Shown: piece by piece, positions 21,631-45,847 of the stretch
How positions within the stretch are numbered: position 1 is the stretch's first letter
Layout: each line of letters starts with the position of its first letter
Notes under the pieces: model-generated
Databases searched by the model: none
Told to the model about the DNA's origin: nothing
The model's input: only the letters and a program-made list of their open reading frames with translations
Made by a program: the position numbers and the translations under genes
Origin: Lepidodermella squamata
Taxonomy: Eukaryota; Animalia; Gastrotricha
NCBI GenBank assembly: GCA_047495785.1
Contig: JBLDXI010000048.1
Coordinates: 620,001 to 684,000 of the forward strand
Length of the DNA: 64,000 nucleotides
Direction: 5' to 3'

Positions 21631-22344
21631 ATGCCGTCAGCAGATACGGACCGGTTTTTCAACCCGTTAACTAGGCACCCTAACGCCTATTACACCGCTA
21701 CTACAACATCGTCATGTTCGTGTTGTAGCTCGTGCAATTCATCATCGAACAAATCCGCGCCGGTTCCGCGGCGATTTCGCAAAAAATCAGCGTCAAATCA
21801 TCACCACCGGCAGCCGTTTTTAATCACCCCAGTTCAGCCGCAATTCGGCCCAGCTTTAGCTTTCCGGCCGTCTTACGCTGACTTCGCAATGGCAAACTAC
21901 CTTAACAACCAGGCGATGGGATTTTTCCGGCCGAAACAGGTCGAGAATCGATCGCCGGGCAATTTCGGGATGAAGCCGTCGATGAAAACCGGGCAAATTT
22001 ACGCGATCGAACTACCACCGGCTCATTTATCGTTACACAAGCCGGCGTTGCTATTCGATATTCTACCTGATAAGCGAACGCTTCAAATTGTTCGGGATCA
22101 AATCGCGGTTGAAAATTCGGGAATTTACGAAACGCTGCCCGATGAAGACTGCTGCCAGCATCAAATTGGTTCGAATTCCGTTACTAGCAGCAGCTGTAAT
22201 GAAAACAAGTCGAAATCAAAAATATCACACAAACAAATTACGTGCGCGTGTAACAGGATGCGCGATAATAACAAGAAAAAGCGCGCTAAAAAATGGCCGT
22301 TTTTACTGTATTGTTGTTTTGAAGCACGCGATCAACGTGAATAA
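21631..22344 (+). CDS. Hypothetical 237-aa low-complexity protein
   Basis: ATG-initiated ORF richer in GC than its flanks, with AATAAA at the stop. Ser/Cys/His runs and a basic C-terminus with a CC pair. No recognisable domain. Confidence 0.45.
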   Translation: MPSADTDRFFNPLTRHPNAYYTATTTSSCSCCSSCNSSSNKSAPVPRRFRKKSASNHHHRQPFLITPVQPQFGPALAFRPSYADFAMANYLNNQAMGFFRPKQVENRSPGNFGMKPSMKTGQIYAIELPPAHLSLHKPALLFDILPDKRTLQIVRDQIAVENSGIYETLPDEDCCQHQIGSNSVTSSSCNENKSKSKISHKQITCACNRMRDNNKKKRAKKWPFLLYCCFEARDQRE

Positions 22345-23158: not shown

Positions 23159-25059
23159 TGGAGTTCGGCAATATCACATAAAACTGGTTGCTAGTTTTCA
23201 ACTTTCGATTTCAAGGTCTATTAAACTAGAATACGTATTTCCCACCGACATTTTTTCATAGTTGATGGAAACTTTGTCACACCGACATTTATATCACACC
23301 GGTTCATCAACCGGTTTTTTGGCGTCATTATCAGTTTGCACCTTATGGGCTTTGAGGCGCGCGCGCATTTATATAAAACGGAAATTTCGACTTATTCTCT
23401 ATTGTATTGAATTTTGTCCAAACCAGCGCGAAATTCACTTTCACTTCCGAGCAAAACATCAAAAAATCGTATGTTACAACCAACGCTGGAAAACTAAATT
23501 TGTTTATCAAGGGGGATGGTCCTATTTTTCTATTGCAAGCGATCGGTTCAGGTTTCAAGTGCCAATGCGGCTGGAAAGGGTTCCAGCCGGCCGCGATTTT
23601 TTACCTAAGCAGAGCGTAATTGCTTGAGAATTAGATTTTATTTCATCCGCCTGTCATCACCAATAGATAAAATTTGGTAGAGCTATATCGAAAAATCGCT
23701 GATTTTTTAAAATCGATTACTGAATCGATATCAAGGTGGAAAATAACTTTTTAGCCAATATGCGCGGAATAATAAGATCTGCTTGTTACGCAAAATGAAA
23801 CAAATTAGAGCCTTGAAAAAATAGTATTCTTTGAAAAATCCGCTGACCTATTGATAATCCATCTATTTTCAAGATTTTTTTCAAAAGTTGATTTTTCTTT
23901 CGTAAATACCTGCATTATGAATGGAAACTGCCCTTACGCAAGCGCGTGCGGAATTTTGTTTTGGAAAAAAACAATGATATGAATTTGCTCATTTCACAGC
24001 AAAAAATACAGATTGGTTTCAATGTTTTCATTTTAACCTCCAAAACTTTCCAGCATCTTTACAAAACGCAATCATGACCCAGTTTAACCTTATTAACTTC
24101 GCACAACCGCGCTTTTTAACGGAAAATCGTGCCGCTTCGCCTTATCTCTACTGCTTTTCCCCCGATTCTTCGGAAATATCCCGAAAAATGCTCTATAGGG
24201 CTCCCGCTTCCCGCTGAGTCCCGCTGAATCACGTTATATTTTCGAAATAAAATCTCCAAAATAGCAATATTTATATATTTTTAATATTATCCAAGCTGAA
24301 TTAATATTGACGATGAGGTCGAAATTTTCGCAGCAATTTATCGTAATTAATTCTTGATAGCCGGGATTATATTTTATGCGATAAATTTTCCTCTCAAGCC
24401 AATATTGCCGGCTTGACTCTTGCTTCTTTTAAAATAAAATAGGATATTGTTACCGTGTAAGATTTCAACCACCAACGATAGGGTAAAAAGAGGGAGGTGA
24501 AATATAATGACCCGCTCGAGACTTTGATTAGACTTGATAATGAACCAGACTAAGACACCGGATGCTACCTTGTTTTCCTGTTACCATCTTGGGCGCGTGC
24601 CACCCGGAAATCGTCATGTATTATGAAAGTAAATACGAATTTTTAAATTTTCCAATCAATATAAATGGGAAAAAATTTCAAAAAATTTAGGAAAAAATAT
24701 ATTGCCGATAAATCCGCTTTTTAAGAATTACCAATTATTCATGTATTTTTTTACTCATTTTTCGAATAATTTTTTCTTCGTGTCCTGTTTTCGGAAAAAC
24801 TTTGTAAACAAGTGCTACTAAGTGTTTTTTTCAAGTAATCGCGTGTGGCACGCGTCTCGATCGGCCCCGGTGCGCAACAATTGCGTTTTTCACGGAATAG
24901 CCGAAACGCGTGCCGTCACGTTATCAACCTAACAAATTTCATTCACACCAATCAGTTTTATTTTTTATCATTTTAAATAATTTCGTTTTAGTAGATATAG
25001 CTCTATTTTAACCATAAAACCCAAAGCAGCATATACTCAGTTTGTTTTTGCGTTACACA

Positions 25060-28000
25060 ATGGCAATTTCACCCGGGGAGTTGCCAATGATATTGGTATT
25101 GTTACTCGCCGGTTTCCTCGCCAGTGCCAAGGCAGCATCAGCCCGTGCCGAAGCATTAGGCGATATGGGAGATGATATCGACTTGCTGCCGACGTTCTCG
25201 CATCAGCTGCATCGAGAACGGCGAGCTATCTCAAACTTTGCCGGCTTTTTCTCTCAAACGACATCGTTCAGTACGACCGGAACAAGCGCATGCACTGGCA
25301 ATCAAGGAGGCGGGTACCACAATTCCTACATGAGCAGCTTCATGTGTCCGCCTGATACGAGGAGATCGCTGTCCTCGACCTCCTTGTGGCCGTACTCCCG
25401 CTTCGCTTCCTCAACCCAATACTGTATGAGCAGCATGGCTGGGTGCTGGCGTGCGCAAGGTGATCCGAATTTCGGCTCTGCGGTATTCTTCACGGTGTTG
25501 AACAATGGCCGAAATACAACTGTCAATTGCTTCAATACCAACGTCACGGACTGTGGGCCGAATTACGTATCAACAACTTTCCCGATGCTGTGTCGCTATA
25601 GCGACGCTGTCAACTCAGCCCCGCTGCAAACTTGTTACTTCAGGGTCTGCTACAATTATTCTGGCCCGCAAGATGAGTTCGGTGGTGTTTTCTCAACCTG
25701 TGATTCGTGTGCTGGTCTAGCACCGGGTCACCCCTGCCAACCAATTGGGAATGCTGCCGCTAACAACGAAGCGCGCTGTCCGCTGGGCTTTATTGCTGAG
25801 CCGGTAACTGACTTTTTGTCTACGACTATGGACTGCTTAACAAAGGACAACGTCAAAACTTACTGCCAATACACGATGTGGTACTGCCGCAACAACATTG
25901 GTGGCGAGAAGGGTGGAAAGGGTGACAAAGGAAACGACGGAAGACCCGGTGTTGACGGTAAGCATCTGAAAATAGTATCCTAATCATCTTTCCCCTGCTA
26001 ATGAAATATCAGGCTGTAACAAAAAAAATTAAATTAAAACGTTCAACCTAAGAGGTCAAGCCAAAACCGCTCAACCTGCAACACGGGTTATCTTTTTTTC
26101 TTCAAAAATGCTGCGGACATTTGTTATCATAAAAAACTAAAAATGTAATATACAAATTATTTAATTTATTAATGTCATAAAAAGTTGTAATTAAAAAATT
26201 TTCACCTTGAAACCAAATATGCGCGCTAAATTTCAAAATTGTCAGTTGCCAAGATCGACGTTTACTCGGTAGTGTCAGAGATTGACTTCCTCTAACTTGA
26301 ATGATGAGCTAGTGGTGTTCATGCCTAAGTCTAGCTGAATTGACGCTCTAATACGTTTAGTGCTTGAAATTATCGATGCTGTCTCTCGTGTACTTACCAA
26401 TATTACTTACCATACTAACCATAATCCTCTACAATATTGATTATTGATTTGCCAGCAATTGAATGTCTATTTTTCGTCTCTTTTTCTCTCAGGTTACAAA
26501 GGCAATGAAGGTAAGTTGAAGTAAACATGTACCTGTTAACAATTTCTACGCAACATTTTCGAACAGGTTGCCCTGGTCCTTCAGGTCCAAAAGGTACACA
26601 TTTTGCTTGTCATTGATGATTTGGTGTGATTATTTTATTCTTCTTTAGGTTCCAAGGGTGATGCCGGTGTGAACGGAACCAAGGGTATCGATGGTATGTG
26701 GTTTTACCAAGAAAAAGGCTCTGTTTAATGTATTATCAATTTCAAAGGCTACAAGGGCGTTGACGGCAGACCCGGTACACCCGGCGGTCCTGGTTTGTTA
26801 CACTGCGCCAAAATACAGCGTTTATTCACTTTGGTTTTACCTTGATAGGTCCAAAGGGAGAACCTGGTTGCGATGGAAAAAACGGCACACCTGGTTTTAA
26901 CGGTACTGATGGCACCCCCGGTAGTGCCGGCACCCAGGGTTCCAAGGGTGACAAAGGAGATCAAGGAACGCCTGGTGAAGGAGGTAATTTTCATCACTGC
27001 CGTGTAATGATTTTGGCTGAACTGCTTATTTTTGTGCGCAGGTGTTAAGGGTCAAGAAGGTACGGTTGTTTCCGCCTGAAATGGGCTAATCACCTGCTTG
27101 ATTTGGTTCGTAGGTTGCCCTGGCGCTCCTGGTCATAAGGGTGCGAAAGGTGACGCTGGTATCGATGGTAAGTTAACATGATAATCTGAATAAATTGTCT
27201 ATTGAATGCATCCTTTCCGTATTAAACAGGATCGAAAGGTAACTTGAAATTCACCGATGAGGTATTCGATTCAATATATTTCTGGCGTCGTCAGGCGAAG
27301 CTGGTCTGAACGGAAAGAACGGTTGTCCTGGTTTGTTTAAATTTTATTATTTTAATTTTTTCGAACCTGCATGCTGATTTTTTTACCAGGCACGAAGGGA
27401 GATCGCGGCTTCGAAGGTCCTATTGGTGAGTGATTTTTTCTATTATAAAATAGCTTTCGTCATAAAAAAAATGATTCTACTTAGGTCCTGAGGGTCCGTG
27501 GGGATCGAAAGGTGGCCGAGGCGATATTGGCTCCAAGGGTGACATGGGTTTGTTTTATAATGATTTATTTCCGCGTTCTACATCATCTTCGTTTTAAAGG
27601 CTCCCAGGGCAGCAAAGGCCTAAAGGGTGATCAAGGATCTAAAGGCGTACAAGGAAGCCAAGGATCTAAAGGCGCCCAGGGCAGTCAAGGCAGCAAGGGT
27701 GCCCAAGGTATGAAATATCTATTATTTTCTCTAAATTTCTAGCAATTATTATCTATTTTCACAGGCTCTCAGGGCAGCAAAGGTGCCCAGGGAAGCCAAG
27801 GCTCGAAAGGCGCACAAGGAAGCCAAGGATCCAAGGGTGCTCAAGGTAGGCGCATCTCAATAATGCGCTTTTTGATTACTCAAATTGCTTTATTTCTATC
27901 CAGGCTCCCAAGGATCGAAGGGCCACCAGGGAGACCAAGGTTCCAAGGGCAACAAAGGTATGTGTCTGAATAAACTATTTCACTTTGCTCATTCCTTTAA

Positions 28001-31000
28001 TTTACCAGGTAACCAAGGAAGCCAGGGTTCGAAAGGTCAGAAAGGTGAGATTAAAGCAATCTCTTGCAAATGCCTTTTACTAATATTTGTGTTCAACAGG
28101 CCACGACGGTGATATTGGTTCGATCGGCCCAATTGGTCCCATGGGTGAGTGGATTTGTTTTAGTGAACTGAATGGAGCTAATTTTTTGCTGCTTTTTTTT
28201 TAGGCCCACAGGGTTCCAAAGGACAAAAAGGAGACCAAGGCTCGAAGGGTGCCCAAGGCTCCCAGGGTTCCAAAGGTGCCCAGGGCTCTCAAGGTTCCAA
28301 GGGTGCTCAGGGCTCGCAGGGATCCAAAGGTGAACAAGGCTCGCAAGGCTCTAAAGGAGCTCAGGGTAGCCAGGGCTCCAAAGGTGCCCAAGGCTCTCAA
28401 GGATCTAAGGGTGCGCAAGGTTCTCAGGGCTCTAAAGGCGCTCAAGGTAAGATTTTCTACGCTTGATAGTTTGTGATCCTAAAATGTGTTTTATTACAGG
28501 ATCGCAAGGATCCAAAGGTGCTCAAGGTAGCCAGGGATCTAAGGGCGTTAAAGGTAAGAAATCAATTACCTACTGATGCTGTGTTAATTTTACGAATGAT
28601 TAACTTAACAGGTGACCAAGGCAGCCAGGGTAGCAAAGGAACCAAAGGAGATCAAGGGTCTCAAGGATCGAAAGGTCTTATGGGCTCGAAAGGTGAGATA
28701 CAATGGTTATGAAAATCTGTTTTTAAATTGTACATTTGCAAACAGGTAACCAAGGATCCAAGGGCGCTCAAGGTTCTCAGGGCTCTAAAGGTCAAAAAGG
28801 TGACCAAGGTAGCCAGGGTTCGAAGGGTGCACAAGGTTCGCAAGGATCGAAGGGCGACAAAGGCGACAAGGGCAACCAAGGTTCGCAAGGATCGATCGGT
28901 CCAATTGGTCCTATGGGCCCGCAGGGTTCAAAGGGTGCTCAGGGTAGCCAAGGCTCTAAGGGAGCCCAAGGCTCTCAAGGCTCTAAAGGTGCCCAAGGCT
29001 CACAGGGTTCCAAAGGGGCTCAGGGTAGCCAGGGTTCGAAGGGTGCTCAGGGATCGCAAGGTTCAAAGGGCGCTCAGGGAAGCCAGGGTTCAAAGGGCGC
29101 ACAAGGCAGCCAAGGCAGCAAGGGTGCTCAAGGTTCTCAGGGATCGAAGGGCCAACAAGGTAGCCAAGGTTCCAAGGGCGAACAAGGCTCACAGGGCTCC
29201 AAGGGTGCTCAAGGTAGCCAGGGCTCTAAAGGCGCTCAGGGCAGTCAAGGATCGAAGGGTGCGCAAGGCAGTCAGGGATCCAAGGGCGCTCAGGGAAGCC
29301 AGGGCTCAAAGGGTGACAAGGGCAACAAGGGAGACATCGGTCCGCAGGGTTCCATCGGTTCTATTGGACCTATTGGTCCCATGGGTCCACAAGGCTCTAA
29401 AGGTCAGTCATTTGCATAACTTCCTGTTTCTCTTCTAAATATTTCATTTCAGGAACAAAGGGCGACAAAGGCGATCAAGGATCCAAGGGAAATCAAGGTA
29501 TGAATTGCTTGGTTTTGAAAACTCCGAGATAATGAATTTCACCAAACAGGCTCTCAGGGATCCAAGGGCGCTCAAGGTAGCCAAGGTTCTAAAGGTGCCC
29601 AAGGCTCTCAAGGTTCTAAGGGTGAGCAAGGCTCTCAAGGCTCCAAGGGCGCTCAAGGTAGCCAAGGCTCCAAAGGCGCTCAAGGTATGTGCATAATTTA
29701 TGCTCTTAGAATTTCATAACGATGATTTTCAACATTTAACAGGATCTCAGGGATCGAAAGGTGCTCAGGGTTCCCAGGGATCTAAGGGAGCCCAAGGCTC
29801 TCAAGGTTCCAAAGGCGAACAGGGCAGCCAAGGGAGCAAGGGTGCTCAAGGAAGTCAAGGCTCTAAAGGTGACAAAGGAGACCAGGGAAGTCAAGGTTCC
29901 AAAGGTGCCCAAGGATCGAAGGGTGAGATATTTGGATTGATAATTACATCCGAATTATTATGTTGTATAAATTTCTGATTCCAGGTGTCCAAGGATCTAA
30001 AGGTAAGATAAGAATATAATCAACATACTATGTTCACTTTCAACTTGAATTTTAGGTGACCATGGTTCGCAAGGTTCGAAGGGTGAAAAGGGTGATCATG
30101 GCTCTCAAGGCTCTAAAGGCTATAAAGGCGACCAAGGCTCTAAAGGAGCGCAAGGTTGGTTCAATTTTAACAATGAGTGTTTCTTCTAATATACTCGCGT
30201 TTTTGTTAGGATTGATGGGATCTAAAGGTCTAATCGGTATGTTTTTATTGGCTCACCAATTACCAATTCCCTAATTTATATTTATTTTCTAGGTTCACGT
30301 GGTCCCATCGGTCCAATGGGCCCGCAAGGTTCAGAGGGTCCTCAGGGTGTTCAAGGCTCCAAGGGCGCGCAGGGTAGGTTTCACAATTACAAGTAATGCT
30401 GGAATATATCTTTTTTGCCCCGCAGGTTCACAAGGATCCAAGGGTGCCCAAGGCACTCAAGGTTCGAAAGGTGCCCAGGGCTCGCAAGGGTCTAAGGGTG
30501 AACAGGGTTCTCAAGGATCTAAAGGTGCCCAAGGCTCACAGGGATCAAAGGGTGCACAGGGTTCTCAGGGGTCCAAAGGCGCTCAAGGCTCCCAAGGGTC
30601 GAAGGGAGCACAAGGATCGCAGGGCTCCAAAGGTGCTCAGGGTAGCCAAGGCAGCAAGGGCGATCAAGGTTCGCAAGGTTCTAAGGGTGCTCAGGGTAGC
30701 CAAGGCAGCAAGGGCGCTCAAGGTTCGCAAGGTTCTAAGGGTGCTCAGGGTAGCCAAGGCTCCAAGGGGGCTCAGGGTTCGCAAGGATCCAAGGGCGCTC
30801 AAGGTTCACAAGGATCCAAGGGCGCACAGGGATCCCAAGGATCTAAGGGCTCGAAAGGGGACAAGGGAGAAGTCGGTTCTCAAGGCTCTATTGGTTCAAT
30901 TGGCCCGATTGGCCCCATGGGTCCTCAGGGTTCCAAAGGTACGTTTAAACATGTTTTCTTGCTCTTTCTGCATGTCTTGTTTTCCAGGACAAAAGGGTGA

Positions 31001-34000
31001 TCAAGGCAGCCAGGGGTCGAAAGGAAGCCAAGGTGAGGTTTCCGACTTGTAACTGTTAGCGAAGAAATGAATTCTATATTTTTGATTTCAGGCTCCCAAG
31101 GTTCGAAAGGCGCACAAGGATCGCAAGGCTCGAAAGGCGCTCAAGGCTCTCAGGGATCGAAGGGGGAGCAGGGTAGCCAAGGTAGCAAGGGTGCTCAAGG
31201 GTCGCAAGGTTCCAAGGGCCAGCAAGGTTCGCAAGGCTCGAAAGGCACTCAGGGTTCTCAAGGATCTAAAGGCGCCCAAGGTTCTCAAGGTTCAAAGGGT
31301 GAACAGGGATCGCAAGGATCTAAAGGGGCTCAAGGCTCACAAGGTTCAAAGGGTGCCCAAGGCTCCCAGGGCTCGAAGGGTGCTCAGGGTAGCCAAGGTT
31401 CTAAGGGCGAGCAAGGTTCCCAAGGCTCGAAGGGTGCTCAAGGGTCGCAGGGCTCCAAGGGAGCACAAGGTAGCCAAGGTTCTAAAGGTGCCCAAGGATC
31501 TCAAGGTTCGAAGGGAGCCCAGGGATCGCAAGGTTCTAAAGGTGCTCAGGGATCTCAGGGTTCAAAGGGTGCTCAGGGTAGCCAAGGGTCTAAGGGCGCA
31601 CAAGGTTCTCAGGGTTCGAAGGGACAAAAAGGAGACCAAGGCAGCCAAGGCTCAATCGGTATGTACCTAATGTAATCGAATATAAGTCTGATAACAGCTT
31701 TAATTTTTCTACGTTAGGTCCTATCGGTCCAATGGGTCCTCAGGGCTCTAAAGGTAATGCACGATATAGTCTTTAAACCGTTCCCTCAAAATGTATCGCA
31801 TTCAATTTTCCAGGTCAAAAGGGCGATCAGGGTTCGCAAGGATCGAAAGGCAGCCAAGGATCTCAAGGCTCTAAGGGAGCACAAGGTGTGTTTTGCATTG
31901 CATTTGTATAAGTGTATCTTATTGCGCTGAAATTCTAACCCTGGCTAGTACGAATTTGAGGTCCACCTATCGTGTGGCTGTATTGTAAGAACGTCACGAT
32001 TTCACGCGATTTTTCCTTTCGATATCGCGTCTCTTCATTGGTTTGCCAAAACATGTGTTATTTCATTGGGCACCGTGAACCTGGAGAATCATTATTTCCC
32101 ATAACTTGCAGGATTAATTTTGGCTAGATATTGTTTGGATGGCTCGCAGTTCCTCAATTATAGGCAATTATATTAGAAACGTATGCAAGTCGATTGAGCT
32201 GTTTCCCCTATTATTCATTATTTGTGATGGAAATTATTTTCGAATTTGATTGAACATTTTATTTTGCAGGATCTCAGGGCAGCAAAGGCGCTCAGGGCTC
32301 GCAAGGCTCCAAGGGTGAACAAGGCTCCCAAGGTTCGAAAGGCGCCCAAGGATCGCAAGGCTCTAAAGGCGCCCAAGGCTCTCAAGGCTCAAAGGGCGCC
32401 CAGGGCAGTCAAGGCTCGAAGGGTGCCCAAGGAAGCCAAGGCTCAAAGGGCGAAAAAGGTACGCTAATTTGATTTCGATGGCTTGAAGTTTTTCAACTTT
32501 TTTATTCACAGGCGCTTTCGGAAGCAAGGGTGATCAAGGCTCTAAGGGCAACCAAGGCTCGAAGGGTGATCAGGGTTCTCAGGGCTCCAAGGGTTTGTTT
32601 TTTCAAGACCTGGCCACTAATCCTTAACTGTTTTCTTCTCCAACCACTACAGGTAGCCAAGGATCACAAGGTTTGTCACAATCTTGCTTAAGAGCTGCCA
32701 TTTATTATGCTGATTCAATTTTAAGGATCAAAGGGCGCCCAAGGTTCCAAGGGCGAGAAAGGCGATCACGGAAGCCAAGGCTCGAAGGGTGATCAGGGCA
32801 GTCAAGGATCGAAGGGAGCTCAAGGTCTGTTTATAATTATTTTGTCATTTCTGCATATCTCTAATTATTCAATTTGATTGTAGGCTCTCAAGGATCGAAG
32901 GGCGCCCAAGGTAGCCAGGGCAGCAAGGGTGCTCAAGGTTCTCAAGGATCTAAAGGATTGATGGGATCGCGAGGCTCGCAAGGCTCTGCCGGTATGACTT
33001 GAGATGAATTTCGTAAAAATAAGTTTATGCCCGCTTTTTGCAGGTCCAATTGGTCCAATGGGTCCTCAAGGTTCAAAGGGTGAGTTGTTTCCTCGCGTTT
33101 GCATTTATAAATTTTATCATTGAATTCCTACAGGCCAAAAGGGAGACCAAGGCAGCCAAGGCAGCAAGGGAGCCCAAGGGTCACAAGGTTCGAAGGGCGC
33201 TCAAGGAAGCCAAGGATCAAAGGGAGCACAAGGTAACTTTGCCTGGAAGAAATGTCTTTCTTGAAATTTAATCTACTTTGTATTTACAGGTTCACAGGGT
33301 AGTAAAGGTGAACAGGGTAGCCAAGGCTCGAAGGGTGCCCAGGGATCTCAAGGGTCGAAGGGTGCTCAAGGTTCTCAAGGCTCAAAGGGTGAACAAGGAT
33401 CGCAAGGATCCAAGGGTGCCCAAGGCTCCCAAGGTTCGAAGGGTGCGCAAGGATCTCAGGGCTCTAAGGGTGCTCAAGGCAGTCAGGGTTCGAAGGGTGA
33501 ACAGGGCTCGCAAGGCTCTAAGGGCGCTCAAGGCTCACAGGGCTCCAAGGGTGCTCAAGGCAGTCAAGGATCAAAGGGCGCTCAAGGTTCTCAAGGTTCT
33601 AAGGGTTCTCAAGGCTCACAGGGTTCGAAGGGTGCTCAGGGTTCCCAAGGCTCAAAGGGTGCACAAGGCAGTCAAGGCTCGAAGGGCGAGAAAGGTGATC
33701 ATGGTTCGCAAGGATCTATCGGTAGGATTAAACGTGTATTCCATAATTGATTCTTCATGACATTGTTATTTAGGTCCGATCGGTCCAATGGGTCCTCAAG
33801 GTTCAAAGGGTCCGTTTTCTTAACTTCATTTAATTTCTTGAGCTAATTTTTCAATTCTTTATAGGCCAAAAGGGAGACCAAGGCAGCCAAGGAAGCAAAG
33901 GTTCTCAAGGATCTCAGGGTTCCAAAGGTGCCCAAGGATCACAAGGATCGAAAGGAGAGCAGGGCAGTCAGGGATCTAAAGGTGCGCAAGGTTCTCAAGG

Positions 34001-37000
34001 TTCCAAGGGTGCTCAGGGCTCTCAGGGCTCAAAGGGTGCTCAGGGAAGCCAAGGTTCCAAAGGTGAGAAAGGTGATCATGGCTCGCAAGGATCGAAGGGT
34101 TCTAAGGGCGATCAAGGTTTGTCAAATGAAGTGATCTGAAACTCTTAATGATATTTTTTGTTCTGGGCAGGCTCCCAAGGTTCTAAGGGTGCTCAAGGCT
34201 CGAAGGGTACGTTTCATTTTCTTTTGATTTTATCGATTTGACCATTTCTTTGTTATGCGCAGGAGACAAAGGAGACCAAGGAAGCCAGGGCTCGAAGGGT
34301 CAACAAGGTATGTTTCTACCCTAACATTTTCGATTATTTTTCATTTTATCAATGCAGGCTCTCAGGGCTCGAAAGGTGCTCAAGGCAGTCAAGGGTCTAA
34401 GGGCAGCCAAGGTTTGTGCTATTTTACCATGTTTTTACAGATGCATGATTTTACTGCATATTTTCAACAGGTTCCCAGGGCTCAAAGGGCGACCAAGGTT
34501 CTCAAGGCTCGAAAGGCGCACAAGGCTCGCAGGGCTCGAAAGGCGCACAAGGTTCACAAGGATCTAAAGGCGAGAAAGGCAGCCAGGGCAGCCAAGGTTC
34601 GATCGGACCTATTGGACCAATGGGTAGGGAATTCACTATAATTCCGTGGCAAATTTTCTTATGTCTAATGAAATTTTCTAGGCCCGACTGGTCCACAAGG
34701 CAGTCAAGGTTCTCAAGGCTCTAAAGGCGACAAGGGACAGAAAGGTGATCAAGGCTCTAAGGGTGCCCAAGGTTCACAAGGCTCGAAGGGCGAACAAGGT
34801 ATGTTTTTCATTTCAAACCTTCAATTCATGCGTACATTTGTTATCTGTTGCAGGCTCCCAGGGTAGCAAAGGTGCCCAAGGCTCTCAGGGCTCTAAAGGT
34901 GCTCAAGGATCGCAAGGATCTAAGGGTGCTCAGGGTTCTCAAGGATCGAAGGGTGCTCAAGGCAGTCAAGGCTCGAAAGGAGAACAAGGCAGCCAAGGAT
35001 CGAAGGGTGCTCAGGGCTCGCAAGGCTCCAAGGGTGCCCAAGGATCCCAGGGTTCGAAGGGTCAGCAAGGTAGCCAAGGCTCCAAGGGTGCTCAAGGCAG
35101 TCAGGGTTCGAAGGGCGCACAGGGCTCGCAAGGCTCCAAAGGTGCCCAAGGTTCACAGGGCTCCAAGGGTGCGCAAGGTAGCCAAGGCTCCAAGGGCGCT
35201 CAGGGATCGCAAGGATCTAAAGGTCAACAAGGCAGCCAAGGCTCCAAGGGCCAGAAAGGGGATCTCGGTTCGCAAGGTTCTCAAGGCCCGCAAGGATCAA
35301 TCGGTATGATAACAATGTCCATAATCGATATTTGACTTGATATGTCTTCTTTTTTCATAGGACCCATCGGACCTATGGGACCACAAGGATCCAAGGGTGA
35401 GTTTTCGAACATTGGCTGTTTTGCGTTTTGATTTATTTAATTTTTATCCAGGTGACAAGGGCGACAAAGGCGATCAAGGTTCTCAAGGATCCAAGGGCGC
35501 ACAAGGCCCGCAGGGATCAAAGGGTGCTCAGGGATCTCAAGGCTCGAAGGGTGCTCAGGGCAGCCAAGGCTCAAAGGGCGCTCAGGGCTCTCAAGGCTCA
35601 AAGGGTTCTCAGGGATCTCAAGGTTCTAAGGGAGCTCAGGGTTCACAAGGATCTAAGGGCGAGCAAGGCTCGCAGGGCTCTAAGGGAGCGCAAGGTAGCC
35701 AAGGATCAAAGGGTGAACAAGGATCACAAGGATCTAAAGGCGCCCAAGGTAGTCAAGGCTCAAAGGGTGCTCAGGGTTCTCAAGGTTCGAAGGGGCAACA
35801 AGGCAGCCAGGGCTCGAAGGGCGAACAAGGTTCGCAGGGCTCGAAGGGCGCTCAGGGAAGCCAAGGTTCAAAGGGTGAGCAGGGCAGCCAAGGATCTAAG
35901 GGCTCTCAAGGATCTCAAGGCTCGAAGGGTGAACAAGGTAGCCAAGGATCGAGAGGTCTTATGGGCAGCCGTGGCTCGAAGGGCAATGCTGGACCTATCG
36001 GTCCGCGAGGTTTGTTTCACTCTCTTACTTTTCCTTTCTATCTATCGGCAGCCTCTCATGATTCCGCCCGAATTCTATCTACATTCTCATACAATTTTCT
36101 TGGGAATTAAAATTAGTCTTTATTTTCTACGAAATTGACCGAAGTAACAGCGGTCATGTATGCTTATGCCGTGGCATATTAACTTTCTCATACAAATTCC
36201 TAATCTCTGTTGTTCATTTTGCCGTGGTTCGTCCCATTCTTCAAAACTTTGCAGGGTTAAAAGTTTTTAGTTTCGGATAAATAACACAATTTGTTATTTC
36301 AGGGTAAGAAGTGACTTGCTTATCATGAACGTTGAAATTACACAAGTTAGAGTACTAGTGCTCGTCCTAGCTCTGATCAAAACTTGACTTCGAACTGATT
36401 AATTATTTGGATCATTTCATCTTCATGCTCATGCTTTTACAGGTCCGCAAGGCATCCAAGGCGGCGAGGGACCCAAGGGTGCGCAAGGCTCGAAGGGAGA
36501 CCAGGGATCTCAAGGCTCTAAAGGTGCCCAAGGCAGTCAAGGATCTAAAGGCGCTCAGGGTAAGACTTGAAATAACTTCCTACAGCCTCAGTATATTTTT
36601 TTCCATCCCACTGTAGGCTCGCAAGGATCCAAGGGCGATCAGGGTAGCCAAGGTTCGAAGGGTGCCCAAGGCTCCCAAGGATCTAAAGGCGCCCAAGGCT
36701 CGCAGGGCTCGAAGGGTGAGCAAGGTAGCCAGGGCTCCAAGGGTGCCCAGGGTAGCCAAGGCTCTAAAGGACAACAAGGTATGTTTTCCGACTATTTTGC
36801 TTGCTACCTGCAATGTATTCCATATCACAGGCTCGCAGGGATCTAAAGGCGCCCAAGGCTCTCAAGGTTCAAAGGGTGCCCAAGGTAAACTTCAATCGGC
36901 ATGACAGCGTCAGGATTTCCATTACATAAATTTGTGTACTACAGGATCACAAGGTTCTAAAGGTGCCCAAGGAAGCCAAGGTTCAAAGGGCCAGAAGGGT

Positions 37001-40000
37001 GACATTGGTTCAACTGGACCGCAAGGATCGATAGGCTCAATCGGTACGGCTATTAATAACGCCAAATTGCAACAACATATTTTATTTCTTTTTTATTGCT
37101 ACAGGACCTATTGGCCCTATGGGACCTCAGGGTTCGAAGGGTGACAAGGGCGACAAAGGCGATCAAGGCTCGAAGGGCGCTCAAGGTTTGCTGGACAAAA
37201 ACGTTTTTAACGCTTTCTACCCATTTTGTTTCGAAACAGGATCACAAGGTTCTAAAGGAGCCCAGGGAAGCCAGGGTTCTAAGGGAGCTCAAGGTGGGTA
37301 CAACCCTGCACTTATACCGCCAGTCTTAAAATCTTTGTCATTGTTTATCAGGATCTCAGGGCAGCAAAGGAGAACAAGGTAGCCAGGGTTCCAAGGGAGC
37401 TCAAGGCAGCCAAGGATCGAAGGGTGCTCAGGGTTTGTTTAGCACTACGCTCCATATCTGTACTTTCTTAACTCCTTTTCCATTGCAGGTTCGCAAGGAT
37501 CTAAGGGAGAGCAGGGCTCCCAGGGCTCAAAGGGTGCTCAAGGCTCACAAGGTTCAAAGGGCGAACAGGGTTCTCAGGGCTCCAAGGGCGCTCAGGGATC
37601 GCAAGGATCTAAAGGTCAACAAGGCAGCCAGGGCTCGAAGGGCGCTCAAGGTTCACAGGGCTCGAAGGGAGAACAAGGTAGCCAAGGTTCGAAGGGTGCA
37701 CAAGGATCGCAGGGTTCCAAAGGAGCACAAGGCAGCCAAGGCTCTAAGGGCGACAAAGGTTTGTTTTTGCATAATTCCTGCATTGAAATGGTGACCATGT
37801 GTCTATTTTCATTTTCTAGGTGACCAAGGCTCTAAGGGACAGCAAGGCAGCCAAGGTTCTAAAGGCGATCAAGGTTTGAATTTCTCACCTCTCACCTTCT
37901 CCAATCAATCATCAAATGTTCTTTTTCTTCAGGTTCACAAGGCTCCAAGGGCCACCAAGGCGACAAAGGCTCGCAGGGATCTGTCGGATCTATCGGCCCA
38001 ATCGGTCCTATGGGCCCACAGGGTTCGAAGGGTGCTCAGGGTTCCCAGGGTTCGAAGGGCTCGCAAGGCTCTCAGGGCTCCAAGGGTGCTCAAGGCAGTC
38101 AGGGTTCGAAGGGCGCGCAGGGCTCGCAAGGCTCCAAGGGTGAACAAGGCTCGCAGGGCTCGAAGGGTGAACAAGGTAGCCAGGGCTCCAAGGGCGCACA
38201 AGGATCGCAAGGAAGCAAGGGTGCTCAAGGCTCTCAAGGCTCGAAGGGTGAACAAGGTTCGCAGGGCTCCAAGGGTGCTCAAGGCAGCCAAGGCTCCAAG
38301 GGCGAGCAAGGATCACAAGGATCGAAAGGTGCCCAAGGCTCTCAAGGTTCAAAGGGCGCTCAAGGTTTGTCATGTTTATGCTTTCCTTACAATATTTTCG
38401 ATGGCCTCGAATCGCTAAATTGATTTTGAGAATTGAACCTTAAGCGAAATACGTTTTTTGGTTCACGCTTATTTTTCATCGCCTTGATGGCAATATTCCA
38501 ATTGATGTCCTGAATCCTCTTTTATGCTTAGTCTGGATTTTAAAATTTTCCGGCTGTACTGTTTGGAATAGTTTAAATACTTAAAATTTTGTCAAACTTA
38601 TATTAATTGATATATTTATTGTTTGATTGATAAATATGTTGACCCTTTCGTTATTCAGGTTCGCAGGGTTCGAAGGGAGCCCAAGGCAGCCAAGGATCCA
38701 AGGGCGATCAGGGTAAGACACTTTGACTCCTACGCGAGTGAAATTGTCTATACTGATGTTTTTCTGTAGGCTCTCAGGGTTCTAAGGGTGCCCAAGGCAG
38801 CCAAGGATCGAAAGGCGAGAAAGGTGGCAAAGGAGACCAAGGCTCACAAGGCTCAATTGGTAAGAAACGCTGAAAGCTATTGGACCTGCTTTGTGAATAA
38901 TCCTTTTCTTTCAGGTCCTATCGGCCCAATGGGTCCTCAAGGTTCGAAGGGTCAGCAAGGTGACCAAGGTTCCAAGGGACAACAAGGTTTGACAACAAGC
39001 GCTCTTCAGCTTCCAAAATGGCTAATAATTGTTTCTCATTCCAGGATCTCAGGGCTCTAAAGGTTCTCAAGGTTCACAGGGCTCTAAGGGCGAGCAAGGC
39101 AGTCAGGGTTCGAAGGGAGCTCAGGGCAGCCAAGGCTCTAAAGGGCAACAGGGATCACAAGGTTCTAAGGGTGCCCAAGGTAGCCAGGGCTCTAAAGGTG
39201 AACAGGGCTCGCAAGGTTCCAAGGGTGCTCAGGGATCACAGGGATCTAAAGGCGAACAAGGCTCTCAAGGTTCTAAGGGCGCACAAGGATCTCAAGGCTC
39301 CAAGGGTGAACAAGGATCTCAAGGTTCCAAGGGTGCTCAGGGCTCGCAGGGATCCAAAGGTGAACAAGGCTCGCAGGGCTCTAAAGGTGCTCAGGGTAGC
39401 CAAGGCTCCAAAGGTGAGCAGGGATCTCAGGGTTCTAAGGGCTCACAGGGATCTCAAGGATCGAAGGGCGAACAAGGCTCGCAAGGTTCTAAGGGAGCCC
39501 AAGGTCGGTTTCTCTCTTACTCTGTTTAAATGATATATCAATTTCATGTTTGCCACAGGTTCTCAGGGCTCAAAGGGAGCACAGGGCAGCCAAGGTTCTA
39601 AAGGCGAACAGGGTAGCCAAGGTTCGAAGGGTGCTCAAGGCAGCCAAGGATCCAAGGGTCAACAAGGTATGTTATGTGTACTTTTCTGTAAACTAGCTAA
39701 TTTCTGTTAAAACAGGCTCCCAGGGATCGAAGGGTGCGCAAGGCAGCCAGGGATCTAAAGGTCACCAAGGTGCGTCGATATTTTTAACTTTTTTCTATTT
39801 TGGTTTAATATGCTTCTTATATTCACGCATCAGGAGATCAAGGAAGCAAGGGCAGCCAAGGAAGTCAAGGATCCAAAGGAGAACATGGCTCGACGGGACC
39901 TCAAGGTTCTCAGGGATCAATCGGTAATTTTCTTTTCTAAATATGTTTTTCTCTCACGCTTGTGATATACTCTTTGACAGGTCCAATCGGTCCTATGGGC

Positions 40001-43000
40001 CCTCAGGGATCTAAAGGTTAGTTGTTTGTCTTAACCATGAAATTCTTAATGGTTGTTTTTCTTCTCAGGTGATAAGGGCCAGAAAGGTGACCAGGGCTCT
40101 AAAGGCAGCCAAGGATCGCAAGGCTCAAAGGGCGCTCAAGGCAGTCAAGGCTCGAAGGGTGCTCAGGGTAGCCAGGGCTCGAAGGGTGCTCAAGGTTCAC
40201 AAGGGTCTAAGGGCGATCAAGGCAGTCAAGGCTCCAAGGGTGCTCAGGGCAGTCAAGGCTCTAAAGGTGAACAAGGCTCTCAAGGCTCTAAAGGTGCTCA
40301 AGGTAGCCAGGGTTCGAAGGGTGACCAAGGTTCCCAGGGATCGAAGGGCGCACAAGGATCTCAGGGCTCGAAGGGCGAACAAGGATCTCAAGGATCGAAG
40401 GGCGCTCAAGGTTCGCAGGGCTCTAAAGGCGCACAAGGAAGTCAGGGATCCAAGGGCGAGCGAGGTATGTTTGCTTTTCTCCCAATATGTTGTGTATGTT
40501 GTGAATCATATTCTTCTCAGGATTGATGGGTTCAAAGGGTCTAATCGGTATGTTTCTGTTACTAATTTGTTACGCTGTTTGACTTAATTTCAATTATTAA
40601 GGCTCGGCCGGTCCAATTGGTCCGATGGGTCCGCAAGGCTCAATGGGCTCTCAAGGATCTCAGGGCTCAAAGGGCGCTCAAGGTAAGCTTTTTCATGGTT
40701 CGCGTTTCTTTTAAGCTATGTTCTTATGATTTCCAGGTTCCCAGGGATCCAAAGGCGATCAAGGCAGTCAAGGCTCCAAAGGGGCTCAGGGTTCTCAAGG
40801 CTCAAAGGGTGCTCAGGGCTCGCAGGGCTCTAAAGGTGAACAAGGCTCCCAGGGTTCGAAGGGAGCACAGGGCTCTCAGGGCTCAAAGGGCGAACAGGGC
40901 AGCCAAGGCTCTAAGGGCGCACAGGGCTCTCAAGGCTCTAAAGGTCAACAAGGTAGCCAGGGCAGCAAGGGCGAACAGGGCTCACAAGGCTCAAAGGGTG
41001 CTCAAGGCTCTCAAGGTTCGAAGGGTGCTCAAGGCTCGCAGGGCTCGAAGGGTGCTCAAGGTAACGTTTCCTACTTTATTCCCATTGTTCCAGCACGTAA
41101 TGTATCTTGTTAAACAATAGGTTCTCAGGGAAGCAAGGGCAGCCAAGGAAGTCAAGGTTCAAAGGGCCAGAAGGGAGATCAGGGATCGCAAGGTTCTATT
41201 GGATCGATCGGTAATTACTTCTTTCTTTCGAATATTCTCTCCTTCATTATTGCTGTTTTTAGGTCCTATCGGCCCCATGGGACCGCAAGGTTCTAAAGGT
41301 TGGTTCAATATAGATTTTTTCACGGGGATGCATATTTAATATTACATATTTTTAAAGGTGACAAGGGCGACAAAGGCGATCAAGGCTCCAAGGGAGCTCA
41401 AGGATCCCAGGGAAGCAAGGGTGCCCAAGGCTCTCAAGGCTCCAAGGGTGAACAGGGTTCACAGGGCTCCAAAGGTGCCCAAGGCTCTCAAGGTTCGAAG
41501 GGTACTCAGGGCTCTCAGGGCTCAAAGGGTGAACAAGGCAGCCAAGGCTCTAAAGGCCAACAAGGTGTGTTATCCTTTTAAATGAAATTATGTCAATTTT
41601 GATATATTTATATTGCAGGTTCTCAGGGCAGTAAGGGCGCTCAAGGCAGTCAAGGCTCGAAAGGAGAACAGGGCAGCCAAGGATCGAAGGGTGCTCAAGG
41701 TTCTCAAGGTTCCAAAGGCGAGCAAGGTAGCCAGGGCTCGAAGGGTGCTCAGGGCAGCCAAGGATCGAAGGGTGCGCAAGGCTCTCAAGGTTCCAAGGGC
41801 GATCAGGGCTCGCAGGGATCAAAGGGCGCTCAGGGTAGCCAGGGCTCCAAGGGCGAACAGGGTTCACAGGGCTCCAAAGGTGCCCAAGGTAGCCAAGGGT
41901 CTAAGGGAGAACAAGGCTCTCAGGGTTCTAAGGGCGCCCAAGGATCTCAAGGCAGCAAGGGTGCTCAAGGCTCTCAAGGCTCGAAGGGCGACAAAGGAGA
42001 TCAGGGATCAAAGGGCAGCCAAGGCTCACAGGGCTCAAAGGGTGATCAAGGATCTCAGGGTTCAAAGGGTGCTCAGGGTAGCCAGGGCTCTGAGGGTGAG
42101 CAGGGCTCTCAAGGCTCCAAAGGGGCACAAGGATCCCAAGGAAGCAAGGGTGCCCAAGGCTCTCGAGGCTCCAAGGGTGAACAAGGATCCCAAGGATCAA
42201 AGGGTGCTCAGGGATCTCAAGGTTCGAAGGGTGCTCAAGGTAGCCAAGGCTCTAAAGGCGCACAGGGCAGTCAAGGATCTAAGGGAGAGAAGGGCGACAT
42301 TGGATCACAAGGGTCGCAAGGCTCGATAGGTATGTGATGTTCTTTCCCGTAATACAGTCCTTTTATAGAATCAATTCTTCTCTCTAGGTCCTATCGGCCC
42401 CATGGGTCCTCAAGGCTCTAAAGGCAACCAAGGTTCTCAGGGATCTAAGGGCCAAAAAGGTTTGTGTTGACTGTTGTAAGACTAAGTCGCTGTATAAATT
42501 ATCATTTGATCAGGTGACCAAGGATCCAAGGGTCAACAAGGCAGTCAGGGATCTAAGGGCGATCAAGGTATGAAAATACTACATCTATTTTACTCTCTAT
42601 ATTCTCTTATTTCTTTTACAGGTTCACAGGGATCTAAGGGTGCTCAAGGGTCGCAAGGCTCTAAGGGAGCTCAGGGAAGCCAAGGTTCTAAAGGAGAACA
42701 AGGTTTGTTCTTATGCAGTTGAATATGTTTATGTTAATGTCGCTCTATTAACAGGTTCGCAGGGCAGCAAGGGTGCTCAAGGCTCACAAGGCTCGAAGGG
42801 TGATCAGGGCAGTCAAGGCTCGAAGGGTGCCCAAGGAAGCCAAGGATCGAAGGGTGAACAGGGTTCCCAGGGCTCGAAGGGTGCTCAAGGATCGCAGGGC
42901 TCTAAGGGTGAACAGGGTTCTCAAGGCTCTAAGGGTGCCCAAGGCTCTCAAGGATCGAAGGGTGAACAAGGTAGCCAAGGCTCCAAGGGCGCTCAAGGTA

Positions 43001-45847
43001 CGTTCTTTATATTTCTCGTCCTCTTTTTAATGATGTTCTTTTTTAGGTTCCCAGGGCAGCAAGGGTGAACAAGGTAGCCAGGGTTCTAAAGGCGCCCAAG
43101 GATCACAAGGGTCTAAGGGTGCACAAGGCAGCCAAGGATCCAAGGGTGAACAAGGTAAACTTAACATTTATGAGTTTATGAATTTTCAAACCTGTCCGCC
43201 TTCATTTTAGGTTCTCAGGGATCGAAGGGTGCTCAGGGCAGCCAAGGATCGAAGGGCGAACAAGGTATAATAATTGTCTTACGTTAAAATACAGCTTTCT
43301 CATCCGATTATATTCCATTGCAGGTTCACAAGGGTCTAAGGGTGCACAAGGCAGCCAAGGATCCAAGGGCGAGAAGGGCGACAATGGCACTCCTGGCTCT
43401 CAAGGATCTATCGGTAATATATATATTCTCTCATTGTTTGCTTGACTATGTTTGCGTTTTTATCAGGTCCGATCGGCCCAATGGGACCTCAAGGCTCGAA
43501 GGGTCAAAAGGGAGATCAGGGCTCTAAGGGTGCTCAAGGTTTGCAATCGTAAATGCCGACAAGCAGCTTGAAACTGTTTTGCCTTTCAACAGGATCTCAG
43601 GGTTCGAAGGGTTCCCAGGGTTCGCAAGGATCTAAGGGATCTCAAGGTAATTGATATTTGTATTTATTCTATCAGTTTTCATTTAATTCTTCTTGCTCTG
43701 TTCTAGGCTCACAAGGCTCTAAAGGTGCTCAGGGATCCCAGGGTTCGAAGGGTGACCAAGGCAGCCAAGGATCCAAGGGCGCTCAAGGTATGAATCCTCC
43801 TTCCATGTGACAAATTTTGCAATATTTATTGTCTTCTGTTACAGGATCTCAGGGTTCAAAGGGTGCTCAAGGTAGCCAAGGTAGCAAGGGTGACCATGGC
43901 AGCCAAGGCTCGAAGGGTGCTCAAGGATCACAAGGCTCCAAGGGCGATCAAGGTTTAAAGTTTTTTATTTTAATTGATCTATTTCTCTAATGATTGTTTC
44001 TTGCAGGCTCTCAGGGTTCCAAGGGTAACCAGGGTAGCCAAGGATCAAAGGGTGAACAAGGTTAGTATGCCTATGATTGGCATTCGATCTATTGTAACTT
44101 GACTCTTGTTATTAGGCCCCTATGGATCGAAGGGCGACAAGGGCATTGATGGATCAACTGGTCCTACTGGTCCTACCGGCCCTCAAGGTAATTTGCTCTC
44201 TTTTGTGGTAGATTGTTGAGATTTCATCGCAATTTCATAGGCTCTAAGGGTGCGGATGGTGCGACTGGTCCTAAGGGTGAACCTGGCGCAATGCCTCCTA
44301 ACAACCCCGGCATTCCTGGTGGAGATGGCGCGAAAGGTTTGTATTAAACTTGAAAAAGCGGTGTCTCGTCAATTTTTACCATCAATGCTCAGGTGACAAG
44401 GGCGAACGTGGACCCATTGGTAATAGCTATCCGCCAAATCATTTGATTTTTTGATGAGTTCTGTTACCCTATAGGTCCTATCGGCAACACCGGTCCCATC
44501 GGTCCTCGCGGTTATCAAGGCTCGCAGGGTTCCCAGGGTAGCCAAGGTGAGTTTGTTTTTGGCCTTCCTGAAAATTGATTAAATTCACTTATTTTCACAG
44601 GTTCTCAAGGCTCCAAGGGTCAAAGGGGTGACATGGGCTCCAAGGGTGATCAAGGAAGCCAAGGTTCAAAGGGCGCACAAGGATCTCAAGGCTCTAAGGG
44701 TGAACAAGGTTCTCAGGGATCAAAGGGTCATCAAGGATCGCAGGGATCTAAGGGCGAACAGGGTTCTCAAGGCTCCAAGGGTGCCCAAGGTTCTCAAGGA
44801 TCGAAGGGTGATCAAGGCAGCCAAGGCTCGAAGGGCGCGCAGGGTTCTCAAGGATCTAAAGGCCAACAAGGCAGCCAAGGTTCCAAGGGAGAACAGGGCT
44901 CACAGGGCTCTAAGGGCCACCAAGGTTCGCAAGGATCTAAGGGCGAGCAGGGATCGCAGGGTTCGAAGGGCCATCAAGGCTCACAGGGCTCTAAAGGTGC
45001 TCAAGGTTCACAAGGCTCTAAAGGTGAACAGGGCTCGCAAGGTTCCAAGGGCCACCAAGGTAAGAAACGCCTTTAATTTCTTACATTCCTGAGTCTCATT
45101 ATTCGTCCTCGACAGGTTCACAAGGCTCTAAGGGAGACAAGGGCGATCAAGGTTCCAAGGGTGCTCAAGGTATGTTTCAATTGCTCGTTTCTTGAATTTA
45201 GGTTCAATTTGACAATGTTTCTAGGTCCCCAAGGTCCGCAAGGTCCTCAAGGCCCACAGGGTCCGCAAGGTCCCCAGGGTCCACAAGGCCCGCAAGGCCC
45301 GCAAGGCCCGCAAGGTCCTCAAGGTCCGCAAGGTCCACAGGGTCCTCAGGGCCCGCAGGGTCCGCAAGGTCCTCAAGGCCCGCAGGGTCCCCAAGGCCCA
45401 CAAGGTCCTAGAGGTACGTTATCTTTTTCTCTGCTTGAGGAATCTATGCTACCTCATTTTTCAAATCACAGGCTTCCAAGGTAGCAAGGGAGCTTCAGGC
45501 ACTCAAGGCCCCAAGGGTGATCACGGCGGTCCCGGCTCCCGTGGTCCGACCGGTCCTCAAGGCTCAAAGGGTGATCGAGGTAAGTCATTCGATTTTCCCG
45601 CTTTCACCTGATCTAATTTTTCCAATCCCCCAAAGGTTGCCCTGGCGTTGGAAAACGAGGTCGCAGGGGTCACACTGGCCCTTGTGGTCCTCCTGGCCCA
45701 CCTGGCCCACCATCGGCGTGCGACGACCCGAGGAAGCTCCGCAAATTGGTCGCTGATCTCTTGAACGAACTTCTTGCCAATGTTTTCGACGATTCCGACG
45801 AAGTGCGGCCACCCAACTACAACGGCGGCAGCAGGTTGAAAATTTGA
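25060..45847 (+). CDS. Giant secreted collagen-like protein: signal peptide, furin site, 16-Cys domain, very long Gly-X-Y region, short C-terminal helix
   Basis: Hydrophobic leader and RERR in Cys-rich exon 1 (to 25957). Many phase-1 exons then encode Gly-X-Y. The last exon (45636-45847) reads GCPGVGKRG...[34 protein letters not shown]...LKI*. Confidence 0.93.
27600..45170 (+). repeat. Coding 27-nt repeat (GSQ-GSK-G[A/E/Q/D/H]Q) interrupted by short introns
   Basis: Directly visible. The peptide is conserved while synonymous positions vary widely. Confidence 0.97.

Follow-up and report, generated by a model that had tools for sequence, protein, structure and literature searches.

Within a 64,000 nt window of the gastrotrich Lepidodermella squamata genome (contig JBLDXI010000048.1, positions 620,001 to 684,000 of the forward strand), a 97-exon gene on the + strand (window positions 25060–45847) encodes a 4,646 aa protein dominated by an exceptionally long Gly-X-Y domain. 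The long (Gly-X-Y)n array places the locus in the collagen superfamily, with formation of a triple helix predicted. We think it probable that the locus is a working gene, present in single copy, whose product is a secreted and probably homotrimeric giant collagen of a hitherto undescribed type. A fuller reading, which we put forward tentatively, is that the product would be a micrometre-long, polycationic homotrimeric rod independent of hydroxyproline, in which the nonapeptide GSQ-GSK-G[A/E/D]Q fixes the phase of Lys-acid pairs. It would represent a bacterial-type design that evolved in an animal, framed by two lineage-specific end modules, a 16-Cys N-domain and a mini coiled-coil nucleator.

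When all six frames were scanned for Gly-X-Y runs, the + strand gave approximately 95 between 25.9 and 45.7 kb (25903–45712), which switch among the three frames and are separated by gaps of 40–60 nt, and the minus strand returned just one chance run. Each run is preceded by AG, and in each the last in-frame Gly codon reads G|GT. In the resulting exon model, in which run ends were adjusted by hand at six places, all introns (96/96) are GT..AG introns in phase 1 that split a Gly codon after its first base. Their median length is 56 nt. Five are longer (127–535 nt); these contain no further Gly-X-Y frame, and Rfam and tRNA scans of window 20–50 kb found no match to a non-coding RNA in them. Exon lengths range from 18 to 711 nt, and all but one of the 95 internal exons (94) have a length divisible by 9. 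The 13,941 nt coding sequence has no internal stop and ends with TGA at 45845–45847. In fibrillar collagens, exons are 54 nt or multiples of 54 nt and start with an intact Gly codon (phase 0), a design that differs from the uniformly phase 1 introns and 9 nt modules found here.

Evidence that the gene is working comes from two sequencing runs. Contigs from the first, a public run that we take to be RNA because they show the pattern that RNA would give, match window 24900–28200 with at least 99% identity. They start in the 25011–25121 bin, around the start codon, cover exon 1, are absent from the 535 nt intron 1, and join across the exact limits of the predicted introns at 26793–26848 and 27331–27389. 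On this reading, the 5′ end of the gene is transcribed and correctly spliced. The second is a DNA run of a related strain, for which 40 differences were listed, 29 of them intronic and 11 exonic. Ten of the exonic differences are synonymous and one is non-synonymous (N538D); all of those in the N-domain (4/4) are synonymous. Purifying selection on the collagen gene is apparent from these differences. The repeat itself contains 191 exact GSQGSKGAQ units, which are encoded by 184 distinct 27-mers that share a mean DNA identity of 76% and a third-position identity of 41%, with Ser drawn from both TCN and AGY codons. Such codon diversity indicates that the peptide repeat is of long standing and maintained by selection at the protein level.

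A sequence this repetitive might be suspected of being non-coding satellite, a pseudogene in decay or an artefact of assembly, particularly as a 14 kb block of the gene occurs twice in the assembly. Set against these are the uninterrupted 13.9 kb frame, the 97 exons with perfect splice sites, the approximately 76% DNA identity between repeat units, which makes collapse or expansion unlikely, the spliced RNA-like contigs and the 10:1 synonymous excess. We regard such an origin as highly improbable and rejected it on the combined frame, splice, RNA-like and selection evidence.

The 121 Mb assembly (151 contigs) was searched for further copies. The N-domain has one other match, 100% identical, at the start of contig C31, where a 14.2 kb block is duplicated in inverted orientation (C31:1045–15280 corresponds to window 37528–23314, 99.5% identical). 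The block includes the promoter region and the 5′ part of the collagen gene and lacks the 3′ half. All of the substitutions lie upstream of the gene and none inside it, so this copy is of no use as a test of selection; we read it as either an overlap in the assembly or a partial duplication of very recent date. The segment encoding the C-terminal tail is present once in the genome. Exons with the same nonapeptide (77–96% identity) were found only in this gene and in the C31 block, and other collagen loci reached at most 58%. By these sequence comparisons the gene is single-copy, and so is the N-domain apart from the duplicated block.

Other giant collagen loci are present at C31:1668236–1686524, C34:322845–325583, C11:1428450–1433641 and C1:348612–363403, and one of them is a 4,503 aa intronless open frame with a 432 nt repeat period. 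In the C31 locus (approximately 1.67 Mb), X is Ser in 33% of triplets and Y is Gln in 37% and Lys in 18%; in the C34 locus (approximately 0.32 Mb), X is Ser in 38% and Y is Lys in 32%. Both have little Pro at Y. This bias suggests a lineage-wide shift in collagen design, and within this Ser/Gln/Lys trend the gene described here goes furthest and is the most regular; it is not a lone exception.

The translation begins with a predicted signal peptide (aa 1–25; 25060–25134) that has a short n-region, a 12-residue hydrophobic core from aa 10 and A-K-A before the likely cut. We consider the hydrophobic segment to be a signal peptide rather than a membrane anchor because of this length, this position and the A-K-A that follows. 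An acidic propeptide (aa 26–55; 25135–25224) ends in the furin/PCSK-type site RERR (aa 52–55), where cleavage is predicted, and is followed by the N-domain (aa 56–281; 25225–25902), which is 226 aa long and contains 16 Cys, within aa 78–276, and three N-glycosylation sequons. The collagen domain (aa 282–4602) is 4,321 residues or approximately 1,440 triplets long. It opens with a Pro-containing, non-repetitive segment of ordinary collagen type (aa 282 to approximately 455, exons 1–11; 25903–27547), which includes an RGD and four Cys, all of them at X (aa 307, 352, 397 and 424). The Ser/Gln/Lys core with the GSQ-GSK-G[A/E/D]Q repeat then extends over approximately 80 exons (27600–45169). The domain runs unbroken for its initial 1,326 triplets (3,978 residues), and only two small breaks follow. 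The first is AMPPNNP at approximately aa 4260 (44288–44308, in the 96 nt exon 44241–44336), and the second is a one-residue slip, GCPGV-GKR, at aa 4583. Near the C-terminal end of the helix, an exon at 45225–45413 encodes a run of approximately 21 GPQ. Directly after the slip there is a second furin-type site, RGRR (aa 4584–4587; 45656–45667), of putative use; cleavage there would remove the nucleation module described below, which is speculation. The helix ends in GPC-(GPP)3-SAC (45677–45721), the sole GPP run, with two Cys (aa 4593 and 4605), a candidate nucleation site and disulfide knot. The 44-residue non-collagen tail (aa 4603–4646) includes a 20-residue amphipathic helix (45728–45787).

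The overall layout in a first-pass annotation of this DNA has held up. It had placed a 16-Cys N-domain after a furin site and a short amphipathic helix at the C-terminus, had described a repeat dominated by GSQGSKGAQ with Ser at X and one Lys per nine residues, and had seen no COLFI, C4 or C1q domain. All of these agree with the translation, the composition counts and the Pfam searches, which returned PF01391 alone (E = 1.2e-42 on one exon). Its estimate of roughly 3000 residues for the collagen region was too low, as the actual domain is approximately 45% longer. The near-micron rod that it envisaged is borne out by a computed length of approximately 1.24 μm (4,321 residues at 0.286 nm).

The composition of the helix is G 33.5%, Q 19.2%, S 19.0%, K 11.0%, A 5.2% and P 3.0%. 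At X, Ser accounts for 58.7%, Ala for 15.8% and Pro for 5.7%; at Y, Gln accounts for 55.3%, Lys for 33.7% and Pro for 1.1% (14 of the 1,326 unbroken triplets). The collagen domain contains 294 matches to GSQGSKG.Q. With 475 Lys and 20 Arg set against 105 Asp and 88 Glu, the net charge of the helix domain is approximately +300 per chain or approximately +900 per trimer, which argues for binding to anionic matrix or surfaces. After cleavage at RERR, the chain would have a mass of 427 kDa and an isoelectric point (pI) of approximately 10.

The acidic residues are not placed at random. Of the 160 at X positions, 151 directly follow a Y-Lys, compared with 54 ± 5.7 expected and a maximum of 75 in 2,000 shuffles. 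Interchain salt bridges of the KGE and KGD type make the kinetic barrier to unfolding higher, serve as kinetic clamps and are commoner in longer helices (PMC11923368). Given its K-G-E/D geometry, the placement of these residues points to a built-in salt-bridge lattice, so the suggestion made at first pass that KGE/KGD salt bridges stabilize the rod is strongly backed. Hydrophobic residues show a weak autocorrelation peak along the helix at 183–189 residues. Within the core, 17 copies of GPIGPMGPQ lie 156–381 aa apart, usually after ...GSIG and often in a 36 nt exon of their own, as at 31718–31753. Gln, Ile and Met are reportedly among the best non-imino residues for the Y position in the host-guest peptides of Persikov and Brodsky, and on that ranking GPIGPMGPQ would be a local clamp. 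Neither GPIGPMGPQ nor a 16-residue motif was matched in the literature.

Because Pro is almost wholly avoided at Y, the rod would be independent of 4-hydroxyproline, despite several P4Ha_N matches in the genome. Lys is a different matter, as 447 residues lie in X-Lys-Gly, the context of lysyl hydroxylases. Genes for the corresponding modifications are present, with two to three GT_PLOD matches (two in tandem) and four GT25 matches (two in tandem), at C12:360066–365633, C1:4995204, C31:267706–274647 and C28:1087635. With PLOD-type and GT25 (collagen galactosyltransferase-type) genes in the genome, hydroxylysine glycosylation of the rod is possible, and the glycan stabilization raised at first pass would be feasible.

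These observations bear on a different account of the rod, in which it would be a glycan-stabilized cuticle collagen of the annelid type, with hydroxylated Lys carrying Gal or Glc-Gal, or with O-glycans on X-Ser, sugars as the main stabilizer and the molecules laid down as crossed fibres of a surface cuticle. The modifiable Lys residues and the PLOD-type and GT25 genes are in keeping with it, as are the lophotrochozoan affinities of the best named relatives of the neighbouring calpain gene and the micrometre length, which is typical of annelid cuticle collagens (PMC12403961). The giant collagens of alvinellids and Eisenia are predicted at 7,700–8,900 aa (up to 8,859 aa), with G-P-Y at 33–40% and G-X-P at 21–33% (PMC12403961). 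They share with the present protein a micrometre-scale, nearly unbroken Gly-X-Y chain in a spiralian animal and probable glycosylation, a likeness for which neither COLFI nor C4 is needed. However, they are Pro-rich at both X and Y, where this rod has 5.7% and 1.1% and a fixed Ser/Gln/Lys nonapeptide. Annelid cuticle collagens are characterized by abundant Pro/Hyp at X and Y together with glycosylated Thr/Ser. No homology of the terminal domains was found to anything. The likeness to annelid cuticle collagens drawn at first pass therefore stands for size and fails for composition. We consider this account possible though doubtful. It is compatible with, and not exclusive of, the rod stabilized by phased ion pairs that we favour.

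The first-pass annotation had also proposed Gln-Lys transglutaminase cross-links. A rod that served chiefly as a substrate for transglutaminase or lysyl oxidase would explain the 19% Gln and 11% Lys, and the genome contains four Transglut_core matches, of undefined type. However, six-frame searches made exon by exon, in which absence is not proof, found no match to Transglut_N, Transglut_C or Lysyl_oxidase. The strict phasing of acidic residues after Lys also points to pairing within the helix and not to a role in cross-linking. The transglutaminase proposal is weakened by these results, and we rate such a chief role as quite unlikely. As none of these three domains was found, disulfides formed through the N-domain and the Cys of the N-terminal helix segment would be the main cross-link option.

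The terminal domains were compared with several databases. All of these searches were run exon by exon, the joined 4,646 aa protein having been used only for counts, and long full-length relatives may have been missed. The N-domain has no family in Pfam at E ≤ 1. It has no match in a word-index search covering proteins of 165–523 aa, and phmmer found none among 1.84e9 representative proteins of any length at E ≤ 0.001. No counterpart was found among PDB sequences or by ESM Atlas features. AlphaFold2 run without an alignment gave a predicted local distance difference test (pLDDT) score of 32, a confidence too low for a meaningful fold comparison. The C-terminal tail has no Pfam relative and no meaningful match to a PDB sequence. 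A C-terminal stretch of 65 aa matches only the Collagen family in Pfam, and weakly, and the Atlas look-alikes of the last 69 aa are generic fragments of collagens IX and XVI with low shared features, a weak lead. The view taken at first pass that the termini match no recognized collagen end domain is upheld by these results, in particular by the blank Pfam, protein-representative, PDB and Atlas searches for the N-domain. Within reach of the searches, both termini appear to be lineage-specific.

Modelled as three copies, the last 69 residues scored an ipSAE of 0.43, compared with 0.02 for the best control, with a partner pLDDT of 59, and the homotrimer runs agreed in at least 78% of contacts. 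In calibration, the mark was reached by 21/30 proteins solved as same-chain pairs and by 0/23 solved as single chains. The modelled contacts run with a one-residue stagger through the Gly-X-Y part and continue in the tail through L34, L37/V38, L41/L42 and L45 (numbered in the 69 aa query) in a heptad pattern. The model supports, and does not prove, that the C-terminal module is a mini coiled-coil registration module. A heterotrimer, in which this chain would pair with another giant collagen of the same genome, finds some encouragement in the Ser at X and Gln or Lys at Y of several of those proteins. However, they lack the nonapeptide (at most 58% identity), the N-domain and the C-terminal tail, and the tail was modelled as a homotrimer. 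We consider a heterotrimer very unlikely and favour a homotrimer because no paralogue has the repeat or either terminus.

Taken together, the following assembly can be proposed. The signal peptide would take the chain into the endoplasmic reticulum, where three chains would be registered at the C-terminus by a three-stranded coiled coil of the amphipathic helix, together with both flanking Cys and the (GPP)3 and (GPQ)n runs. Folding of collagens starts from a C-terminal nucleus and proceeds like a zipper towards the N-terminus (PMC11923368), and the triple helix here would close in this way across approximately 1,440 triplets. Stability would come from Gln at Y, from the 151 ion pairs per chain between a Y-Lys and the Glu or Asp at the next X, and from the periodic GP(I/M/Q) clamps, with a possible addition from hydroxylysine-linked sugars. 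A furin-type protease would cut off the 30-residue propeptide, and the Cys of the N-domain together with the four Cys within the initial 145 residues of the helix could then connect molecules through disulfide bonds, forming a network or fibre. The cationic rod would bind anionic matrix, and its most likely role is a structural one in some extracellular layer, which may be a cuticle or surface coat, an egg envelope, a basal matrix or an adhesive. The sites suggested at first pass (cuticle, tube, adhesive or egg case) are guesses.

The positive charge could also suit a different use, an extracorporeal fibre or adhesive like sawfly silk or the preCols of mussel byssus, in which a polycationic thread or glue would combine with anionic partners. 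The excess of 475 Lys and 20 Arg over 193 acidic residues and the high pI are extreme, and extracorporeal animal collagens free of hydroxyproline are known (PMC3790195). Sawfly silk collagens consist of three small chains with 10% Pro (PMC3790195). They share the lack of hydroxyproline and a role outside connective tissue with the protein described here, which differs in its 4,646 aa, 3% Pro and unrelated termini. The silk-like, elastin-like or His-rich flanks of preCols are missing, and a design with N-terminal Cys and C-terminal nucleation fits any secreted collagen. We rate a thread or glue as unlikely.

No major collagen group accounts for the protein. Fibrillar collagens have a C-terminal COLFI (NC1) propeptide, in place of which there is a 44 aa tail here. 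Collagen IV and the spongin short-chain collagens carry C4 (NC1), and no PF01413 was found; the more than 20 helix interruptions of collagen IV compare with two. C1q-domain collagens (VIII, X, C1q and otolin) carry C1q, and no PF00386 was found. The fibril-associated and membrane-associated collagens whose triple helices are interrupted (FACIT and MACIT) have TSPN, vWA or FN3 modules or a type II membrane anchor, and no such Pfam domains are present. Two details resemble parts of known collagens. In the collagen III knot, Cys lie beside the terminal GPP run, and the 7S region of collagen IV is a Cys-bearing N-terminal helical segment. The Cys next to the GPP run resemble the former, and the N-terminal Cys-containing helix segment can be likened to the latter and could mediate cross-links where ends overlap. 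Nematode cuticle collagens are approximately 300 aa long, with an interrupted helix, Col_cuticle_N and conserved Cys clusters, and are not matched by a protein with a 4,321 aa helix. However, they and the MACIT collagens share with it an N-terminal RxxR, a short way past the signal or anchor, and Cys both inside the helix and at its flanks (PMC10538796). RxxR sites matter for the secretion of nematode cuticle collagens and are also found at the N-terminus of MACIT collagens (PMC10538796).

The top database matches of the repeat exon searched are bacterial and phage collagen-like proteins with GAQ, GSQ or GEQ triplets, at no more than 63% identity. Such proteins (Scl2-type and GxQ-rich tail-fibre proteins) share with the rod a hydroxyproline-free helix built on polar and charged residues. 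They differ in being intronless, with approximately 80–100 triplets and a globular trimerization domain, whereas this gene has 96 introns, a signal peptide, furin-type sites and 1,440 triplets. Its introns and animal neighbours exclude it from their group. In composition they come nearest to the rod among known collagens, a resemblance and not demonstrated ancestry. A horizontal origin from bacterial collagen-like genes was rejected, composition being the only evidence.

Several points weigh against the interpretation of the protein as a disulfide-linked, homotrimeric rod encoded by a working gene. The N-domain could not be folded (pLDDT 32), and the cross-linking role given to it is conjecture based on its many Cys. 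No alignment went into the trimer model, the calibration was made with two copies and not three, and the score of the collagen part may reflect memorization by the model. The RNA support is limited to the first 3 kb, to one low-depth run of presumed RNA and to 2/96 introns. In host-guest peptides, Ser ranks only in the middle among helix formers at X, which tempers the predicted stability of the core. Finally, conservation was traced among close strains only. A relative found in four ENA metagenome assemblies has a calpain that is 71% identical and retains the calpain–PARP1 synteny, but its contigs contain no collagen within 10 kb, with ankyrin genes at the place where the collagen would be expected, and tblastn of both collagen termini found no match in them.

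The usual view is that animal collagens require 4-hydroxyproline. Should the predicted folding of this one hold, an animal would make a helix four times the length of type I collagen with almost no imino acids, relying on Gln and on phased Lys-Glu/Asp pairs. The combination of 1,326 perfect triplets, 3% Pro and phased ion pairs would surprise collagen specialists. If confirmed, it would allow the salt-bridge folding code lately proposed for collagens to be tested in a natural system, and it would be a template for recombinant collagen materials in hosts that lack prolyl hydroxylase. The C-terminal module, if it trimerizes and nucleates, would be a compact new registration tag, and the orphan N-domain may mark an uncharted mode of assembly of collagen networks. 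Together with the other giant collagens that lean towards Ser, Gln and Lys, the gene would point to a lineage that re-engineered its extracellular matrix.

The neighbours of the collagen gene are animal genes, encoding calpain, PARP1 and ankyrin. The best named relatives of the calpain (window 16512–18440, minus strand) are from Lingula, nemerteans, Owenia and molluscs, with 41–45% identity, and no rotifer was among the top 120 matches. Upstream of the collagen gene, a 237 aa open frame (21631–22344, + strand) encodes a Ser/Cys-rich, basic product that has no Pfam match and no counterpart in the contig of the metagenome relative. Directly downstream (46876–49325, + strand), there are three long open frames without a Pfam match, the first type with a hydrophobic N-terminal segment and a Cys/Trp-rich end, another with many N-glycosylation sequons and the remaining one with multiple hydrophobic segments. 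In all likelihood these are exons belonging to one or two membrane glycoprotein genes.

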